Shown here: piece by piece, positions 40,335 through 50,163 of the stretch | Layout of the letters: the number at the start of each line of letters is the position of its first letter | How positions within the stretch are numbered: the first letter of the stretch is position 1 | Origin: Cyanophora paradoxa CCMP329 | Taxonomy: Eukaryota > Plantae > Glaucophyta | DNA length: 64,000 nucleotides | Reading direction: 5' to 3' | Assembly (NCBI GenBank): GCA_004431415.1 | Contig: QPMI01000106.1 | Span: forward strand, 186,001 to 250,000 | Program-made: the position numbers and the translations under genes | Notes under the pieces: model-generated | Databases searched by the model: none | Seen by the model: only the letters and a program-made list of their open reading frames with translations | What the model was told of the DNA's origin: nothing

Positions 40335-41511
40335 ATGGCCTTCGCCGCGACATCGATCGCACCGCGCGCTCCGGCGAGCGAGTTCGCTCCGCCGTGGCCG
40401 TCGACATGCGGCGCTTCGCCGGCCGCTGCTCCAGTGCGCGCCAGCCGCTCGGCCGAGCGCTCGAGCGCCGGCGGGCCCAGCGATTTCCTAGGCAAGCCTC
40501 TCGAGCGGCGCTTCGTCTCCAGCGGCCTCGCACGCGTTCCTGCACCGGTCCTGGACTCCCTGCGGCCCGCGGCGCCGGCGATTGTCATGGCGTCATCTTC
40601 GGAGCGTTGGCAGGACCCCGCTGTCGCAGCGCACACGCGCCTCCTGCTCTCCAGTTTCAGGAGGGTGGTCGGACGGCCCCTGGTGCGTCCTTGGCCCCCG
40701 CCTCCTCCGCCGCTCGCGCCGAGCGTCGCCCCTGCGCATGCCCGGCCGCCAGATGGACCTTGGCGGGAAGGACGAGAGCGATCCGGATGTGCCGCGCATG
40801 GTGTACGAGGCGCCGTTCGTCCTCGTGAGCCACGGCACGGAGCGTGCGCCTCCTTCGCCGCGTCGCCCCGCGCGCCCTGCAGCTGGCCGACGGGCGGCGC
40901 AGAGGAGCCGATCTTCAACTACGCGAACCGGGCGGGGCAGGCGCTGTGGGAGATGGACTGGGGCCAGTTCACGCGGACGCCCTCCAAGGACTCGGCGGAG
41001 CCCGGCCTGCAGGTCGGCCCGCCCCCGCCCCCTCCCCGGCCCCGACCCCGGCCCCCGCCGGCGCCCTCGCCCTCGCCCTCGCGCCCTCTGACCGCGGCCC
41101 TCGCTTCTTCCGCCGCGGCAGGAGGCGCGCCTCAAGGTCCTCCACGACGTGCGCCCCGCCCCGCCCCGCCCGCCCCGCCGCTGCCCTGCCCCGCCCGCCC
41201 TGCCTCGCCGCTGCCCGCTCACGCCCGCGCCGCGGCGCCCCGGCAGGTCGAGAAGGTGCGCGGGGCCGGCCGCCGGACCCCAGTCCGACGCCACGCCACG
41301 CGCGTGCGGGCCGCAGCTGCGGTCGGCCCTCGACTCCGCTCACCCCCCCCCCCCCCCGCAGCAAGGGTACACGGAGGGCTACTCAGGAGTGCGGATCAGC
41401 GCCTCGGGGCGGCGCTTCCGGATCGTGGACGTCGTCGTCTGGAACGTGCTCGACGAGGCGGGCGCCTTCCGCGGCCAGGCCGCCACCTTCCCCCGCTGGG
41501 AGTTCCTCTAG
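40335..41511 (+). CDS. Stand-alone MEKHLA-domain protein with plastid transit peptide
   Basis: MAFAATS...SDFLG transit peptide. LLLSSFRRVVGRPL, YEAPFVLVSHGT, PIFNYANRAGQALWEMDW, TPS, GVRISASGRRFRI..VVVWNV...GQAATF..W. Confidence 0.92.
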
Positions 41512-41598
41512 CCAGCTGCTTGTGGGCCGTAGCTAGCGCTGTATAACGCTTATCATCCCAGCTTCTGGAGTCCTAAGACTAAGACGAGACTAAGGACC

Positions 41599-41629
<31 letters not shown>

Positions 41630-41919
41630 TTAGACGAGCAGGGAATTCGAAGGAAGAGGGAATTCGAAGGGGGGCGAGGTCGAGGGATCCGGAGGAGGGA
41701 AGGGGGAGAGAGAAGGGGGAAGAGGAGGAAGGATCGCGCTCGCCGGGCGCGCGCGATCGAGCGCGAGCGGGCTGAGAGGGACCGGCGGGATCGGGGGCGG
41801 GAGCGGGGCGCAGCTCGAGGTGCGGCGGCGGCGGCGGCGGCGCGTGGCCACTCGAGGCCCCAGGGCGGCCAGGGCCACCTTGGGCCAGGGGATACGTGAT
41901 TTGTGGCCTTCATCAGGAG

Positions 41920-44054
41920 CTACGCGTGCGGTCCCGCGCCGCCCGCCTGCAGCAGCCGCGCCGCCCGCCTCTCTTGCGCGCGCCGCCGATTGTGCTCCGC
42001 CTGGCGCTTCCGCCAACACAGAGGGCATCCGCTCTTCTTCGATGTGCGGTCACTTGGGGTGGCCTGCCACTTGTGCCCGCACTCCTCGATCTTGCAGCGC
42101 CACCTGCCCACGCGTACGCAGGGGCATCAACAGAGACGCTTCGAATTTTCTCTCGCAGACGCGCGCTCCGCTTTTGTCAACATCGCACCAACGCTTCTCG
42201 TGCGAGCCCGGCATCACCTCGCTGGGCTTGAGGCCGCCGTTCGCCTCGACGTCCCACTCCGCGGCCACCTCGGGGAACCGCGCCTCCAGGTTGTTCCAGT
42301 CCGTCACCACCTGTCCCGCACAAGCGGGGCAACTGCGATCGAGAGGCGCTCATGATCAGTCGATCACCGGTACCGAATGTAAGCGTTTGATTTATATAAT
42401 TATTAATAAGATCGCACCCTCTCTTTGCGGTGGTGCGACCGCCTGGAGTCGCCTGCCATCTGCACATTTGCATGCAAATGAAGGTGTAAAGGCGGCATCG
42501 AAGGATGCAAAGATTAGATGTACAGAAGACTGACACATAAGAGCACGTGCTGCATTGCCACCAACACACGAGATGCGAATTCGCGCGGATGGTCTGCGGG
42601 GCAGGTGCGCCGTGATTATGAGAAACGAGGCCGAGGCCAAGAATAGCGATCGTGATTTCGACTGCGCACCTCCGGCGTGCGTGTGCCGTTCCTCTCTGGA
42701 TGCCACTCGGCGGCCGCCTTCTTGTTCAGCGCGGCGAGGCTCTTCTCCGGCGGAACAGCTCGGCCCGAGCCCTTCGAACAAAAAAAGGAATATTCACGAT
42801 CACGTATACGTGTGTGCACTGTGCATATGCATGAACAACAATAAGAAGAAGAATTTCGAGGCGGCCTTACAGAAGATGCACAATGCGGACAGCCTTGTCC
42901 TTTTCTGCGCGAATTCGGTGTAGCATCCCACTCGTGCGCATGATCCACCTGGCATCGCCACCTGATCGCGCAAGTAGTAAAACCAGCTGAAGATCTAGAG
43001 CGGAATGCATTCGTCGAATTAATATTCAATGATTCAGCACACCAGAAGCGCTTCGTGCTCCCGTACGTCACTTCGTCCGGGGTGAGCTCGTTCTTCTCGT
43101 GCCACTCCGCGACCTGAAATAGCATGCGAGCATCGCTGAACGCGCTATTCACTTGCACACGAACTCCAGCTAGAGCGCACCAGGTCGGGACGGACGACGC
43201 TCAACCTGCGCTCCTCGAACGGCGCGTCTCGAGGCGGCATACCCATCCGCGAGGAGCTCTTCTGAAGCTTGCCGCACTCGGGGCAGCCCGATGGATGTCG
43301 AAAGTGCGCTCTAGATGCGACCTTCGTTCTCCAGCGGTGCCCGCAGCCGCTGCACCTCCACCCCGCCCGATAGTTCGAACCGGCCGACACGTCCCGCAGC
43401 GTGACCTGCAGCTGCCGGCCGTCCGGCTCGGGCAGGTCATTCTCCTCCGCGTCCCACTCGGCGGCCAGGTGCGGGTGCGTGTCCGCGAGCGACGTGCCGG
43501 GCGCCGGAGGCTTCGGCCGCACTGCCCGAGTGCGCGGTCGCATTGCTGGTTCTGATGACACAAAGCTGATCATGAAGCCGCTGCTGCCGCGGCTAACGTT
43601 GACGCTGCTGGCTTCTGTCTGCAGCCTCCGCAGCGCTGCAGCTGCGCATGCGGCCGAAGGCCTGTGCGCGGACGGAAGGACGATGCCTGAGCACATCGTA
43701 AACCGAAGCTGTTGGAAGGCACGTAGGCTTAAGGCGCACCACGCTGAAGCCAGCCTGCGGCCGTACAGAGACATGTACATGTACACAGCTGCAGACCTGC
43801 GAGCGGTCAAAACGAGGCGGCGGCGCAGGCGGTCGATGGCGAGCACCCGCGCGCGGACAACTCCGGTCATCGAGCACAGCGCTCCGCTGCGTCGCCGCCC
43901 AGCTCGCTGGAGCGCCCAAGCCGACTCTGACCGAAAGCGCCGCCGCCGCCGCCGCAGCTCCCAACACGCCAGCGCCACTTCCCGGTCCCGCCTGTGCCGA
44001 CCGCGCCGCCCGCAGCGCCCCAGCCCACTCGCGGGCGAACCGCGCCGCCAGCAT
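41920..44054 (-). CDS. Four-repeat DUF4379-type zinc-ribbon protein with organelle-type presequence, copy A
   Basis: Four repeats of SLA..P.LAAEW...N...P..V..GS...WW.C..C.H.W.....R....GCP.C across spliced exons. N-terminus MLAARFAREWAGALRAARS. Confidence 0.85.
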
Positions 44055-44108
44055 TGCACACTGAACGGCCTGCGTACCCAGCTCGTCGACCACCCTGTAC
44101 ACCCTGCG

Positions 44109-45347
44109 ATGTTCGTCAGCGCTGCGGTCGACCTGGTGCAGGGCGGCAGAAGCGTACAATGCGCAGGCTCGCACGGCGTGGCTTCGCACGCGCGTGCGGC
44201 GAATTCCAATCATGCCGCCCTTCGCCGCCCCGTCGTCTGGCAAGCCTCGAGCAGCGGCTCCGAACCCAGCAACAAGCCTCCCCGCCGCCCAGCCGCTGCG
44301 GAAGGCGCCAGCTGCAGGCCCGCAGCTAGCGAGGGCCGGCTGAGGTCATCGGCCATCGCGGGGGTCGCAGCCGCGCTCCTCGCGGCTGCATCGGGACCGG
44401 ATGCCTTCTGCTCGCGTGCGTTGCTGACAAGCCGCGCCGCGCCGCCCGCCCACGCCGCTGGCGGCCGCTGACAGCGAGCCGCGCGCGCCGGCCCACGCGC
44501 TCCAGCCGGATACCCGCTCTCGTGCCCCGTGGAGGACGCCGTGTCGATCGCTCAGTGCTCGGAGAGCTCCCGCAGCTGCGTCAGCGTCTTCAACGAGGCG
44601 GGCCCCGCCCCACCCCGCCCCGCCGGCCCCGCCCCGCCCCGCCCCTGACTTGCGGCGGCGCAGGACGAGGCGCACTTTGCGGAGCCGTGGATGTACGACG
44701 GGCCGCGGGAGAAGGCGCTAGCGAAGCTCCGGCGCCTCCTCGCCTCCCGCGGGGACGTCCGCGTCGTGGAGGACGCCGCCGAGCGGGGGTATATCTACGC
44801 GGAGTTCGCGGGGAAGCTGGGCGCGGTGGACGACGTCGAGTTCTACCTCCCCGCGGACGATGTCGTCGTCCTCTTCCGCAGCAGCTCGCGCCTCGAGCGC
44901 GGCGGCGCCGACCAGCGCCAGCGCATGGAGGAGCTCCGCATCGCCCTCGGCTTCGAGAAGGCCCGCCCCCGTACCCCCAGGCGGCCCCATCCCCCTCACT
45001 TTCGCCGCAGCTGCCGGTGGTCCTCGCGTGGGACCCGCGGTGGTCCAGCAGCGCCGCCGCGCCGTGGGAGCAGGCCCGTACCCCCCTTCCTCCCCCCCCC
45101 TTCCCAGCCCCACGCCTCTTTGACTTTTCAGGGCGTCCCCCGCAGGTCTTCAAGGTTTGGTCCCTCTCGATCCGCGCGCCGGTAGCGCCCGCCCGGTTCT
45201 TGTACCCCTCTGACCCCGTCCGTCCCCTTTTCCTGCCACGTAGCCCTTCGAGCCCCTCTTCAAGGTCGGTACCCACCCCCCTCCCCCTCTCGCACCGCCC
45301 GAGGCCCGCTCACGCCCCCGCAGGAGATCAGCAAGACCCTCTACTAG
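44109..45347 (+). CDS. DUF1499-family protein, plastid transit peptide, copy A
   Basis: MFVSAAV... transit peptide, then CSESSRSCVSVFNE|DEAHFAEPWMY...GYIYAEF..KLGAVDDVEFYLP.DD.VV.FRSSSR....DQRQRMEELRIALGF. Confidence 0.85.
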
Positions 45348-45408
45348 GCCCCGCCCCCCGCTGCCCTTCGACCGGGGTACACGTGCGAATCGGAAAGAAA
45401 GAGGCCGA

Positions 45409-46044
45409 GGCCCCTGGTGCGTCCTGCTCGGCCCCCGCCCCCCGCCGCCCCCTCCGCTCGCGCCGAGCGTCGCCCCCGCCCGGCCGCCAGATGGACCTCG
45501 ACGTGCCAGATGGACCCGCCCGGCCGCCAGATGGTGCACGAGGCGCCATTCGGCCTCGCGAGCCACGACACGGAGCGTGCGCCCCCTCAGCCGCATCGCC
45601 CTGCGCCCCGGCCCCTGCCCCGGCCCCGGCCCTCGCCCTCGCGCCCTCTGACGGCGGCCCTCGCTTCGTTCGCTGCGGCAGGAGGCGCGCCTCAAGGTCC
45701 TCCACGACGTGCGCCCCGCCCCGCCCCGCCCCGCCCCGCCCCGCTCATGCCCGCGCCCGCGCCCGCGCCCGGCAGGTCGAGAAGGTGCGCGGAGCTGGCC
45801 GCCACGTCACGCCACGCGATGCGCGTGCGGGCCGAAGCAGCGAGGGTACACGGAGGGTACACCTTCGAGTCCGCTCACCCCCCCCCCCTCGCAGCAAGGG
45901 TACACGGAGGGCTACGCGGGGGTACGGATCAGCGCCTCGGGCCGGCGCTTCCGGATCGTGGACGTCGTCGTCTGGAACGTGCTCGACGAGGGGGGCGCCT
46001 TCCGCGGCCAGGCCGCCACCTTCCCCCGCTGGGAATTCCTGTAG
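45409..46044 (+). pseudogene. 5'-truncated MEKHLA duplicate
   Basis: Lacks exon 1 (transit peptide) and the PIFNYAN exon. Exon 2 is rearranged; the last exon is intact. Confidence 0.85.
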
Positions 46045-46661
46045 CCCGGCACTTGTGGGCTGTAGCTGTAGCGCGCGAATCATTCCAACATCCGAGCGCG
46101 AAGCCCTGAGCCCTAGAACTAAGACTAAGACTCTGAACACTGAGAAATTTATGTAATTACGAAAGGCGGAGAGCGGGGCTGGGAGCGGGAGGAGGGGGCG
46201 GGCGGGCGGGCGGGCGGGCGGGCGGGCGGGCGGGCGCGGCGCCGGCGCGACTGGTGCGCCGCGAAGGCGCCGCCGCCGAGGGGGACGATGTCGCGATCGA
46301 AGGGGAGGCTCGAGAGGGAAGGCGCGGCGCCGGCGCGACTGGTGCGCCGCGAAGGCGCCGCCGCCAAGGGGGACGATGTCGCGATCGAAGGCGCCGCCGA
46401 GGGCGGGCCCGGCAGGGAAGGGGGAAGGCCTGAGGGGGGAAGGACCGCGCGCCGCCGGCGAGCCCGGGCGCGAGCGCACTGAGAGGGACCGGCGGGGCAA
46501 GCGGGCCAGCAGGGAGAGGGATTTCTCGAGCCAGCAGGGAGGCGGGAGCGGAGCGGGGAGCGAGCTCGAGGGGCGGCGGCGGCGGCGGCGCGTGGCCGCT
46601 CGAGGCCCCGGGGCGGCCAGGGCCACCTTGGGCCAGGGTGATTTGGGCCCTTCACGAGGAG

Positions 46662-48739
46662 CTACACGTGCGGCTCCGCGCTGCTCGCCTGCAGCTGCTG
46701 CGCCGCCCGCCTCTCTTGCGCGCGCCGCCGAAGGTGCTCCGCCTGGCGCTTCCGCGCACACGGAGGGCAGCCGTTCTTCTTCGATGTGCGGTTATTTGGG
46801 CTGGCCTGCCACTTGTGCCCGCACTCCTCGCAGCGCCACCTGTCCACGCGGGGGCATCAACAGAGCCGCTTTGAATTCTTTCTTGCAGATGCGCGCTCAG
46901 CTGTCGATTCTAGCGCACCAGCGCTTCTCGTGCGAGCCCGGCGCCACCTCGCTCGGCTTGAGGCCGCCGTTCGCCTCGACGTCCCACTCCTTCGCCAGCT
47001 CGGGGAACCGCGCCTCCAGGTTGTTCCAGTCCGTCAGGGCCCGTCTTGCGCAGGCGGGGCAGCTGCGATTGAGAGGCGCTCATGATCAGTCGATCAGCAA
47101 ATGCAAGCGTTTGATGAAACAATAAGATCGCACTCTTTCTGGCCGGAGGTGCGACTGTTTGGAGTCGTCAGCCACCTGCACGGCCGCGCACAGCCGCCGG
47201 CGAGTCAAAGAAGTATACGTAGTCACCAGTATTGATAGATCGTTAAACGCACTCATGCAAGCACGCGCTGCATTGCCACCAACACATCAGGTTCGAATTC
47301 GCGCGGATGGTCTGCGGGGCGGGGGAGAAACAAGCTTGAAGACCGAGGCCGAAAATCGCGAGTTCGACTGCTCACCTCCGGCGTGCGAGTGCCGTTCTTC
47401 TCGAGATGCCACTCGGCGGCCGCCTTCTTGTTCAGCGCGGCGAGGCTCTTCTCCGGCGGAACAGCCCAGCCCTTCGCCCAGGGGGAGAAATATTAACGAT
47501 CAGCTTACGAAAAAAAGCATTCAAAGCGGCATAAACATTGAAAAAAGCATTCAAAGCGGCCTTACCGAAGTTGCGCAGTACGGACAGCCGTGTCCTCTGC
47601 TGCGCGTAATCGGTGTAGCCTCCCACTCGTGCGCCGGGTCCGCCTTGCATCTCCACCTGACCACGAGAGGTGGCTAGATTAGCTGAAGAGCGAAAAGCAT
47701 TCGTCGAACTCTGCGCATGCACACCAGACGAGCTTCATGCTCCCATACGTGACATCGTCTGGTGTGAGATCGTTTTCCGGATGCCACTCCAGGACCTGCA
47801 AAAGCACGTACGCGTAAGCGTCGCTGAACGCGTAACTCAATCGTGCAAGAGAGGTGTCGACAGCTGAAGCGCACCAGGTCGGGGCGGACGACGCTCAACC
47901 TGCGCTCCTCGAACGGCGCGCCCCGAGGCGGCATGCCCGGCCGCGGGGAGCCCATCTGAAGCCTGGCGCACTCGGGGCAGCCCGTCGTATGCCGACCGTC
48001 CGCTCTCTGTTTAACGAGCGCTTTCCAGCGGTGCCCGCAGCCGCTGCACCTCCAGCCCGCTCGATATTGCGAGCCGGCCGACACATCCCGCGGCGTGATC
48101 ATGACCTGCAGCTGTCTACTGCTCGGCTCCGGCAGGTCGTTGTCCTCCGCGTCCCACTCGGCGGCCAGGTGCGGGTGCGTGTCCGCGAGCGACGCGCCGG
48201 GCGCCGGGGGCCTCGGTCGGGCTGGCCGAGTGCGCGGTCGCGTTGCTGGTTCCGACGACGCAAAGCTGAAGCCGCTGCTGCCGCGGCTAACGTTGACGCT
48301 GCTGGCTTCTGTCGACGTCTGCAGCCTCCGCAGCGCTGCGGCCGGCGCCGGCGCTGGAGGCCTGTGCGCGGATCCGGACGAAAGACCGACGCCTGCGCAC
48401 ATCGTAAACGGAAGCTGTTGGCAGGCACATCGGCTTAGGTCGCACCGCGCTGAAGCCAGCCTGCGGCCGCGCAGAGACCTAGGCCTACGAGCGGTCAAAA
48501 CGAGGAGGCGGCGCGGGCGGTCGATGGCGAGCACCCGCGCGCGGACAACTCCGGCCATCGAGCACAGCGCTCCGCTGCGTCGCCGCCAAGCTCGCTGGAG
48601 CGCCCAAGCCGACTCTGACCGAAAGCGCCGCTGCCACCACCGCTCCCGACACGCCGGCGCCACTTGCCGGTCCCGCTTGTGCCGACCGCGCCGCCCGCAG
48701 CGCCCCAGCCCACTCGCGGGCGGACCGTGGCGCCAGCAT
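46662..48739 (-). CDS. Four-repeat DUF4379-type zinc-ribbon protein, copy B
   Basis: Same repeat exon structure as copy A, with Cys/His ligands retained (WRCSGCGH..CPEC, WRCKADPAH..CPYC, WQCSAC..CPAC, WRCEECGH..CPPC). Confidence 0.8.
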
Positions 48740-48811
48740 TGCAAACTGAACGGCCCGCGTACCCAGCTCGTCGACCAGCAGCACCAGCCGCCAGCGCCTG
48801 TACACCCTGCG

Positions 48812-50050
48812 ATGTTCGTCAGCGCTGCGGTCGGCCTCGTGCAGGGCGGCAGAACCGTACAATGCGCCGGCTCGCACGGCGTGGCTTCGCACGCGCGTGC
48901 GTCGAGTTCCAATCATGCCGCCTGTCCCCGCCCCGTCGTCTGGCAAGCCTCGAGCAGCGGCGCTGAACCGAGCAACAAGCCTCCCCGCCGCCCGGCCGCT
49001 GCGGAAGGCGCCAGGCCCGCAGCTAGCGAGGGCCGGCTGAGGTCATCGGCCATCGCGGGGGTCGCAGCCGCGCTCCTCGCGGCTGCATCGGGACCGGATG
49101 CCTTCTGCTCGCGTGCGTTGCTGACAAGCCGCGCCGCGCCGCCCGCCCACGCCGCTGGCGGCCGCTGACAGCGAGCCGCGCGCGCCGGCCCACGCGCTCC
49201 AGCCGGATACCCGCTCTCGTGCCCCGTGGAGGACGCCGTGTCGATCGCTCAGTGCTCGGAGAGCTCCCGCAGCTGCGTCAGCGTCTTCAACGAGGCGGGC
49301 CCCGCCCCACCCCGCCCCGCCGGCCCCGCCCCGCCCCGCCCCTGACTTGCGGCGGCGCAGGACGAGGCGCACTTTGCGGAGCCGTGGATGTACGACGGGC
49401 CGCGGGAGAAGGCGCTAGCGAAGCTCCGGCGCCTCCTCGCCTCCCGCGGGGACGTCCGCGTCGTGGAGGACGCCGCCGAGCGGGGGTACATCTACGCGGA
49501 GTTCGCGGGGAAGCTGGGCGCGGTGGACGACGTCGAGTTCTACCTCCCCGCGGACGATGTCGTCGTCCTCTTCCGCAGCAGCTCGCGCCTCGAGCGCGGC
49601 GGCGCCGACCAGCGCCAGCGCATGGAGGAGCTCCGCATTGCCCTCGGCTTCGAGAAGGCCCGCCCCCGTACCCCCCGTCGGCTCCATCCCCCTTACTTTC
49701 GCCGCAGCTGCCGGTGGTCCTCGCGTGGGACCCGCGGTGGTCCAGCAGCGCCGCCGCCCCGTGGGAGCAGGCCCGTACCCCCCGGACCCCCTCCCCCCCC
49801 ATCCAGCCCCACACCTCCTTGACTTTTCTGGGCCTCCCCCGCAGGTCTTCAAGGTTTGGTCCCCCACGACTCCCGCGCTGATAGCGCCCGCTCGGTTCTT
49901 GTACCCCTCTGACCCCGTCCGGTCCGTCCCCTTTTCCCGCCCCGTAGCCCTTCGAGCCCCTCTTCAAGGTCCGTACCCCTCCCCCTCCCCTCTCGCACCG
50001 CGCGGGGCCCGCTCACGCCCCCGCAGGAGATCAGCAAGACGCTCTACTAG
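48812..50050 (+). CDS. DUF1499-family protein, copy B
   Basis: Near-identical to copy A, with intact splice sites and stop. Confidence 0.85.
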
Positions 50051-50163
50051 GCCCCGCCCCCCGCTGCCCTTCGAGCGGGGTACGCATGCGAATTGGAAAG
50101 AAAGAGGCCGCGATTTGAAGGCAGAGGCGTGCGGGAAACGGGTACGGGTGCATGCCTTCCCTC

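Follow-up and report, generated by a model that had tools for sequence, protein, structure and literature searches.

A 64-kb stretch of nuclear DNA from the glaucophyte Cyanophora paradoxa (contig QPMI01000106.1 of strain CCMP329; hereafter the window) carries two neighbouring minus-strand genes, gene A (41920-44054) and gene B (46662-48739), each of which encodes a protein with four zinc-ribbon repeats of the DUF4379 family. To judge from the sequences, about nine exposed positions per repeat, located in the zinc-ribbon half, hold most of the divergence between the two proteins, at a rate equal to or above that of the introns. With a little more confidence than doubt, we propose that A and B are organelle-targeted nucleic-acid binders, that is, paralogs that differ in their targets. 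An earlier note on this DNA had drawn attention to two adjacent residues (the di-residue) that change in every repeat and had read them as a recognition code of an undescribed family; the analysis reported here places the di-residue within a broader variable patch.

Each family member consists of a long, basic and acid-poor N-terminal extension, four treble-clef zinc-ribbon DUF4379 repeats and a basic C-terminal helix. According to our proposal, the proteins would be imported into an organelle, more probably the mitochondrion than the cyanelle, and would bind nucleic acid. As nuclease-free proteins, they would be related both to the DUF4379/CapR-type arrays by which homing endonucleases are guided in bacteria and phages and to the trypanosomatid mitoribosomal proteins mS66 and mt-SAF33. 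During the divergence of the paralogs, the N-terminal helical part of the repeats has been conserved, and about nine exposed positions of the zinc half have changed at or above the neutral rate; they lie near the two knuckles, on the outward side of the second strand and in the initial turn of the short helix. This variable patch would be the ligand-contacting face, so the paralogs would differ in target, and the di-residue would be two positions of the patch.

Two spliced genes with four zinc-ribbon repeats each

The window is GC-rich (58-81% in 2-kb windows) and its introns are short, with GT-AG ends. EukProt lists its proteins under ids of the type tig00000430_gNNN, and C. paradoxa genes bear contig-style names of this kind in 10.1101/674762; together these features are taken to mark the window as nuclear DNA of C. 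paradoxa. Gene B (tig00000430_g641, P0003 in EukProt) has 10 exons on the minus strand (48739-48535, 48484-48446, 48392-47875, 47795-47725, 47656-47566, 47471-47376, 47311-47253, 47175-47134, 47062-46919 and 46839-46662) and encodes 480 aa; its spliced translation is exactly P0003. Gene A (public id tig00000430_g639, mis-modelled there) also has 10 exons on the minus strand (44054-43847, 43796-43740, 43686-43181, 43113-43043, 42961-42871, 42771-42670, 42593-42535, 42459-42418, 42332-42189 and 42103-41920) and encodes 487 aa. The gene A model keeps an open frame with no internal stop, and its introns, all GT-AG, are 50-99 nt long; its start codon at 44054 was set by analogy with copy B. The two proteins are 78.7% identical across 474 aligned residues. 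Database searches used exon or database proteins and folding used P0003, the joined gene A model serving in local comparisons only.

A and B contain four Pfam DUF4379 (PF14311) repeats each. P0003 matches PF14311 over four stretches with 233 bits (paralog range 204-233 bits; curated cut-off 24.5 bits), and exon 1 of A and of B score 52-53 bits each. The Cyanophora family comprises at least five genes, namely A, B (P0003), P0002, P0015 and P0004. In the four paralogs scanned whole (P0002, P0003, P0004 and P0015), DUF4379 was the only Pfam domain and no nuclease domain was found, in agreement with the earlier description of a nuclease-free protein. The zinc-ligand pattern, with which metal binding is predicted, is present in all eight repeats of A and B, as C-x2-C or C-x(3-5)-H at the first knuckle and C-P-x-C at the second.

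Between the two knuckles of every repeat in A and B lies the segment W-x4-XX-R, in which XX is the di-residue. In gene A, the inter-knuckle segments of repeats 1 to 4 are located on the minus strand at 43274-43333 (di-residue AS, 43318-43313), 42880-42930 (NS, 42915-42910), 42320-42458 (GG, 42443-42438; one intron inside) and 42016-42069 (SD, 42054-42049). The corresponding minus-strand segments of gene B are found at 47968-48027 (KQ, 48012-48007), 47575-47625 (IT, 47610-47605), 47050-47174 (NS, 47159-47154; one intron inside) and 46758-46811 (NN, 46796-46791). All eight di-residue positions are therefore changed between A and B (AS/KQ, NS/IT, GG/NS and SD/NN), and the ligands, the W, the R and most of the scaffold are kept. 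This observation, on which the earlier note was built, held after both genes had been spliced.

Both copies are transcribed and spliced, because contigs from RNA-like runs skip exactly the predicted introns and those of the DNA-like run X8 do not. The RNA-like runs X1, X2 and X4 are three runs guessed to be RNA, from two studies, and their contigs give no expression levels. The skipped introns of gene A are 43739-43687, 42669-42594, 42534-42460 and 42417-42333; those of gene B, skipped in contigs of X1, X2 and X4, are 47565-47472, 47375-47312, 47252-47176, 47133-47063 and 46918-46840. All have CT..AC ends on the plus strand, that is, GT..AG on the minus strand, and X8 contains none of these joints and covers the introns. 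Exon 42961-42871 of gene A is an internal piece of one X4 contig. The public model of gene A (P0001, tig00000430_g639, 325 aa) lacks this exon, which encodes the zinc knuckles of repeat 2, and lacks the N-terminal extension, beginning about 160 aa late; its truncation is a modelling error in which one exon was skipped. A start of both genes at an in-frame ATG inside a long open reading frame (ORF), at 43870 and 48558, was considered and is ruled out by the RNA contigs, which remove the 53-nt intron 43739-43687.

Spliced contigs of both copies in all three RNA-like runs, frames that are intact over 10 exons with conserved GT-AG introns, and the retention of all zinc ligands and core residues make it very improbable that one copy is a decaying, unexpressed pseudogene and that the differences between A and B reflect decay. 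The ratio of nonsynonymous to synonymous divergence (dN/dS) over the whole gene, 0.59, is fairly high and would suit such decay, but the ratio falls to 0.40 in the scaffold; the truncation of P0001, which might also be cited in its favour, belongs to the public model and not to the gene. An unexpressed copy was among the findings that the earlier note had named as contrary to its proposal, and here both copies are spliced.

Two features of the gene structure may be recorded beside these results. In repeats 2 and 4, an intron occupies an identical position in an identical phase, splitting the first Trp codon of W-W-x-C behind its second base (43042-42962 and 42188-42104 in A; 47724-47657 and 46918-46840 in B), and the other introns lie at non-matching places between repeats; the matching introns may trace an internal two-repeat duplication or parallel intron gain. 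Exon 2 is 18 nt longer in A (43796-43740) than in B (48484-48446), within a TGT/ACA-rich run that encodes a Cys/Thr repeat, and the gain in A is a short microsatellite-like expansion within the N-terminal extension.

Predicted fold, relatives and likely destination

Residues 140-465 of P0003 were modelled with AlphaFold 2 from an in-register alignment of 143 four-repeat segments, with a mean predicted local distance difference test score of 91 and a predicted template modelling score of 0.62. In the model, a repeat is predicted to consist of two short helices, a beta-hairpin with the first knuckle, a short helix of 5-6 residues and then the second knuckle. The di-residue would be placed in the first turn of the short helix after the hairpin, at helix positions N2 and N3 (K70-Q71 before R72 and I155-T156 before R157, model numbering), and a basic C-terminal helix (model residues 308-325) would close the protein.

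A sequence search of the PDB matched only components of trypanosomatid mitochondrial ribosomes (E 2e-7 to 6e-5): mt-SAF33 (6sga_Fd, E = 2e-7), the multi-repeat chain E2 of the large-subunit assembly intermediate 6YXX, and mS66 (7aor, 7ane, 6hiv). The fold search gave the same group, with mt-SAF33 (6sga_Fd) at Z 12.0 (root-mean-square deviation 3.5 A, 89 of 96 residues), mS66 at Z 10.2, 6yxx_E2 at Z 8.8 and a further match at Z 7.3; nothing else exceeded Z 2.4. Foldseek (E-value 2e-14 to 6yxx_E2) and the Foldseek-independent VIA search agree. Like the Cyanophora proteins, mS66, mt-SAF33 and 6YXX E2 are nuclear-encoded and nuclease-free and have the same fold, from which mS66 may be regarded as a homolog. 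They work in the RNA machinery of the organelle, placement in the ribosome being on record for the trypanosomatid proteins, and mt-SAF33 is listed with the factors that bind the still immature h22/h23 region of the ribosomal RNA (PMC8784144). Nuclease-free, organellar DUF4379 proteins of the RNA machinery are thus already on record. A test of orthology to mS66 or mt-SAF33 failed, as hundreds of bacterial proteins score far higher.

With 19,396 cluster representatives at E <= 1e-3, 4,860 of them at <= 1e-30, DUF4379 is a very large family, and its function has so far only been proposed. Bacterial proteins among the best matches have a median of 9 repeats and up to 18, and some carry DUF559/Vsr, MTES_1575, DUF723 or NUMOD parts. 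In Lausannevirus and Insectomime virus, four DUF4379 repeats are combined with a restriction endonuclease domain (PMC5513546). In homing endonucleases of phage group II introns, a Vsr-type nuclease is preceded by three to five domains of 60 aa, which are related to CapR, DUF4379 and DUF723 and have been proposed as DNA-binding modules (PMC12350094). The earlier statement that DUF4379-type repeats occur in tandem in bacteria and giant viruses, often beside nucleases, was therefore borne out, with nucleases of the Vsr/DUF559 type and with phages as a further group.

The arrays of bacteria, phages and giant viruses are built from the same unit of about 60-70 aa as the Cyanophora proteins and conserve with them the residues L-x4-P-x-L-A-x-E-W, N, G-S, W-W-x-C, H-x-W, R and G-C-P-x-C. 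Three consecutive modelled repeats superpose on bacterial and phage arrays with a template modelling (TM) score of 0.5-0.6 over 210-226 residues, so a regular geometry between repeats is predicted to be common to the arrays. The Cyanophora proteins differ from the bacterial arrays in having exactly four repeats, introns, an N-terminal extension and no nuclease. CapR, CasPR and DUF723 resemble DUF4379 as small Cys-rich zinc domains that often stand in tandem, and theirs give sequence-specific DNA binding (PMC8096241, 10.64898/2026.02.23.707548, PMC12350094). CapR, a repressor that binds DNA, descends from a homing endonuclease of this type (PMC8096241), and the CasPR anti-CRISPR repressors depend on their CapR domains. 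CapR and the CasPRs are likewise nuclease-free derivatives, but they are bacterial or phage proteins and not organellar ones; as for DUF4379, no recognition rule is known for CapR.

The three complete gene models P0003, P0015 and P0004 have 122-148 aa before repeat 1. These extensions are Arg/Ala-rich, with 17-18 Arg plus Lys against 3-5 Asp plus Glu, and include an amphipathic stretch near the N-terminus (helical hydrophobic moment about 0.5); the repeat part has an isoelectric point of 8.8-9.1. No Phe occurs in the first 45 residues of any of the three. In cyanelle transit peptides, a Phe is usually found among the first 10-18 residues, but it is missing from 42 of the 187 nucleus-encoded cyanelle proteins of the same study (PMC4510345). 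Because the extension is basic and acid-poor and lacks the N-terminal Phe usual for the cyanelle, the mitochondrion is the better guess for the destination, and only a guess. Of the mitochondrial-type presequence that the earlier note had described, the Arg/Ala-rich and acid-poor character stands, over a length of 120-150 aa, and an organellar role in nucleic-acid biology has its precedent in the trypanosomatid mitoribosome proteins; the mitochondrial assignment remains a guess.

Close eukaryotic orthologs were absent from the best 120 rows of three protein searches, a result that is little informative since long bacterial arrays dominate a ranking by summed repeat score. An ESM Atlas feature search listed Chlorophyta clusters of similar size, which are candidates by feature only. 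Taken with the trypanosomatid mitoribosome members and these green-algal clusters, the presequence-bearing, nuclease-free four-repeat members of this glaucophyte suggest a recurrent organellar use of DUF4379 beside the pentatricopeptide repeat (PPR), octotricopeptide repeat (OPR) and half-a-tetratricopeptide (HAT) repeat proteins, which is a lead and not a result. This is not a new kind of system: earlier records already cover the domain, its occurrence in tandem, the nucleases with which it is combined and its members in organelles. Nor can the family be called undescribed, as had been claimed: it is a Pfam family of about 19,400 cluster representatives with solved structures, and a modular DNA-binding proposal has been published for related zinc fingers (PMC12350094).

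Distribution of the changes between A and B

The variability of repeat positions was assessed in 2,309 repeats from 259 proteins, which were extracted with a hidden Markov model of the repeat and aligned on 60 match columns, the di-residue being columns 48 and 49. Over the whole family, entropy peaks at column 48 (3.67 bits, first of 60), and close behind it are columns 52, 54, 23, 19, 38, 46 and 39 (3.64-3.38 bits). Column 49, in which S, N, D and H are preferred, has 3.25 bits and is about 13th of the 60. Between A and B, all four repeats are changed at columns 48, 49 and 54, the last of which is directly before G-C-P-x-C, and three of four at columns 30, 39, 44 and 52. When four paralogs are compared (A, B, P0002 and P0015; 24 comparisons per column), changes number 21 at columns 30 and 54, 20 at columns 48 and 49, 17 at columns 38, 44 and 46, and 16 at column 52.

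In the permutation null, the 57 A-B differences were spread over 236 aligned repeat cells. An adjacent pair of columns changed in four of four repeats arises by chance in 0.08% of cases if the differences are spread evenly and in 0.2% among family-wide variable columns, but in 13% among the variable inter-knuckle columns alone, and is hence unremarkable there. The comparison of the di-residue (8/8) with the other variable columns of the zinc half (23/40) gives a Fisher p of 0.038, uncorrected and with the columns chosen after seeing the data. The test of whether the code positions stand out from all other repeat positions thus failed, since among the paralogs columns 30 and 54 vary at least as much as columns 48 and 49. 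The di-residue belongs to a wider variable patch and is neither a distinct hypervariable unit nor a self-contained code. Its unique hypervariability, as claimed earlier, was not upheld, its sites being in essence no more variable than other exposed positions.

The more specific idea of the earlier note was that the di-residue acts like the repeat-variable di-residue of transcription activator-like effectors (TALE) or like PPR code positions, that each repeat recognises one nucleotide or a few, and that diversifying selection acts on the pair in a programmable organellar binder. The eight changes out of eight and the top entropy of column 48 agree with this, as do the regular geometry predicted from the three-repeat superposition and the modelled place of the di-residue in the first turn of a helix. 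Such first turns are often used for base contacts, as in C2H2 fingers. The family-wide data do not have the form of a code, however: 257 distinct pairs occur among 2,300 repeats, SS, AS, SN, NS, AN and NN most often and the top one at 5%, with a coupling of 0.15 bit between the two positions and no small code-like residue alphabet. The rank of column 49, the equal or greater variation of columns 30 and 54 among paralogs, and repeats that are only about 30-40% alike, unlike those of TALE proteins, speak against it as well, and we consider a code of this kind highly doubtful. TALE, PPR, PUF and OPR proteins do resemble the Cyanophora proteins in having tandem repeats with variable positions that recur at a fixed place in the repeat; PPR and OPR proteins, moreover, are encoded in the nucleus and located in organelles. 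Theirs, however, are helical repeats with a demonstrated code of one repeat to one nucleotide and a small residue alphabet, whereas the Cyanophora proteins have a zinc-ribbon fold, a broad residue distribution and about nine variable positions per repeat.

The changes between A and B are unevenly placed within the repeat. When exposed and tolerant positions are represented by the family-wide variable columns, whose choice does not depend on A and B, 31 of 48 repeat cells are changed in the zinc-ribbon half against 7 of 51 in the N-terminal helical half (Fisher p = 1.7e-7). By the Nei-Gojobori method, the 53 inter-knuckle codons have a nonsynonymous divergence (dN) of 0.36 and a synonymous divergence (dS) of 0.19, a ratio of 1.9, and the rest of the repeat region has a dN/dS of 0.40. 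Synonymous sites (0.2-0.25) are less diverged than introns (0.41), probably owing to codon bias, and set against the intron distance the inter-knuckle segment is approximately neutral. The nine hottest columns (30, 38, 39, 44, 46, 48, 49, 52 and 54), whose dN is biased upward by their selection after seeing the data, reach a dN of 0.61 (95% bootstrap range 0.42-0.87) against 0.08 in the other columns, and the di-residue a dN of 1.2 (lower bound 0.68). From their positions in the modelled fold, the hot columns would form one face. Of the survey suggested in the earlier note, with genome-wide paralogs, per-site entropy and dN/dS, five paralogs were found and the entropy was computed, and the codon-level analysis covers A versus B. 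Overall, these comparisons indicate a surface patch that is diverging, and they fit positive selection and complete loss of constraint alike.

A patch of this sort might have arisen through neutral drift. The variable positions would then be the unconstrained surface of a small zinc-stabilised fold, randomised after duplication with the function unchanged, and the proteins would have a structural or scaffold role (e.g., associated with the mitoribosome) exerted through their conserved faces. The similarity of the inter-knuckle dN to the intron distance, the whole-gene dN/dS, the variability of the same columns over all 2,309 repeats of unrelated proteins, and the protein-rich mitoribosomes in which the solved relatives sit are all in line with drift. 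Yet N-terminal-half columns that are equally variable in the family barely changed between the paralogs, and because of this contrast lack of constraint alone does not explain the placement of the changes; the dN of the hot columns and that of the di-residue are also above the intron distance, for columns chosen after the fact. We therefore treat drift as a serious but rather unlikely explanation.

Several points weigh against our own proposal of organellar nucleic-acid binders with different targets. The roughly neutral rate of the inter-knuckle segment is also what plain loss of constraint would give, the hot columns were picked after the event, and the overall A-B dN/dS of 0.59 indicates that constraint is relaxed in general. 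The N-termini are those of gene models, and for gene A the start is placed by analogy. The similarity to mS66 and mt-SAF33 amounts to 17-25% identity over one or two repeats only; trypanosomatid mitoribosomes are, moreover, largely protein, and mS66-type proteins may act mainly via protein-protein contacts. Pfam CapR (PF21817) is matched with only 19-20 bits (E about 1e-3; threshold 24.2), by repeat 4 of P0015 and P0002.

A bolder version of the proposal is that the approximately nine variable positions per repeat, including the di-residue, are a base-reading face and that DUF4379 arrays are a modular, re-targetable scaffold for nucleic-acid recognition, which bacteria and phages would combine with nucleases and which glaucophytes, green algae and kinetoplastids would employ nuclease-free in their organelles, so that A and B would read different organellar sequences. 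We think this improbable as it stands. Whatever the patch contacts, A and B constitute a natural experiment: two adjacent genes, both expressed, whose products differ chiefly on a single face of every zinc ribbon.

The tandem duplication and its surroundings

Genes A and B belong to a tandem segmental duplication of about 4.7 kb (40800-50110), recognised from direct-repeat families spaced 4.5-4.75 kb apart, the identity profile along the units and the Pfam DUF1499 domain in both. Unit 1 (about 40800-45400) and unit 2 (about 45530-50110) each comprise a DUF4379 gene on the minus strand and a divergent DUF1499 gene on the plus strand. Identity between the units is very uneven: 92-100% over 43800-45080, which matches 48490-49780 and takes in the 5' ends of the two divergent genes with the intervening DNA, but 52-91% over the exons and introns of the zinc-ribbon part. 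Identity is complete (100%) along about 480 nt (44315-44800 and 49012-49497), and the introns of the zinc-ribbon part are 68% identical between A and B (Jukes-Cantor distance 0.41). Because a near-identical tract adjoins introns at 68%, the sequences suggest an old duplication in which the 5'-end tract, with the shared divergent promoter and the first exons, was recently homogenised by gene conversion. In agreement with this, the repeat regions of A, B and P0002, a third paralog on another contig, are about equidistant (76, 76 and 73% identity).

The duplicated DUF1499 genes, divergent from the zinc-ribbon genes, lie on the plus strand at 44691-45400 and 49388-50100. RNA-like contigs of roughly 2.4-2.5 kb extend over the first copy; they show a GT..AG joint on the plus strand at 45262>45322, as well as joints at 44958>45009 and 45074>45242. 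At 44792, 45338 and 45372, all three RNA-like runs have other letters, which perhaps come from a paralogous copy or another strain. Upstream of gene A, a long plus-strand ORF contains a MEKHLA domain match (45 bits, about 40899-41006), and the second unit retains only parts of this gene (45531-46067, 81-93% identical). The GC-rich spacer downstream of gene B contains an 81-nt direct repeat (46223-46303 and 46311-46391; 94% identical, 88-nt spacing), which is without counterpart downstream of gene A.

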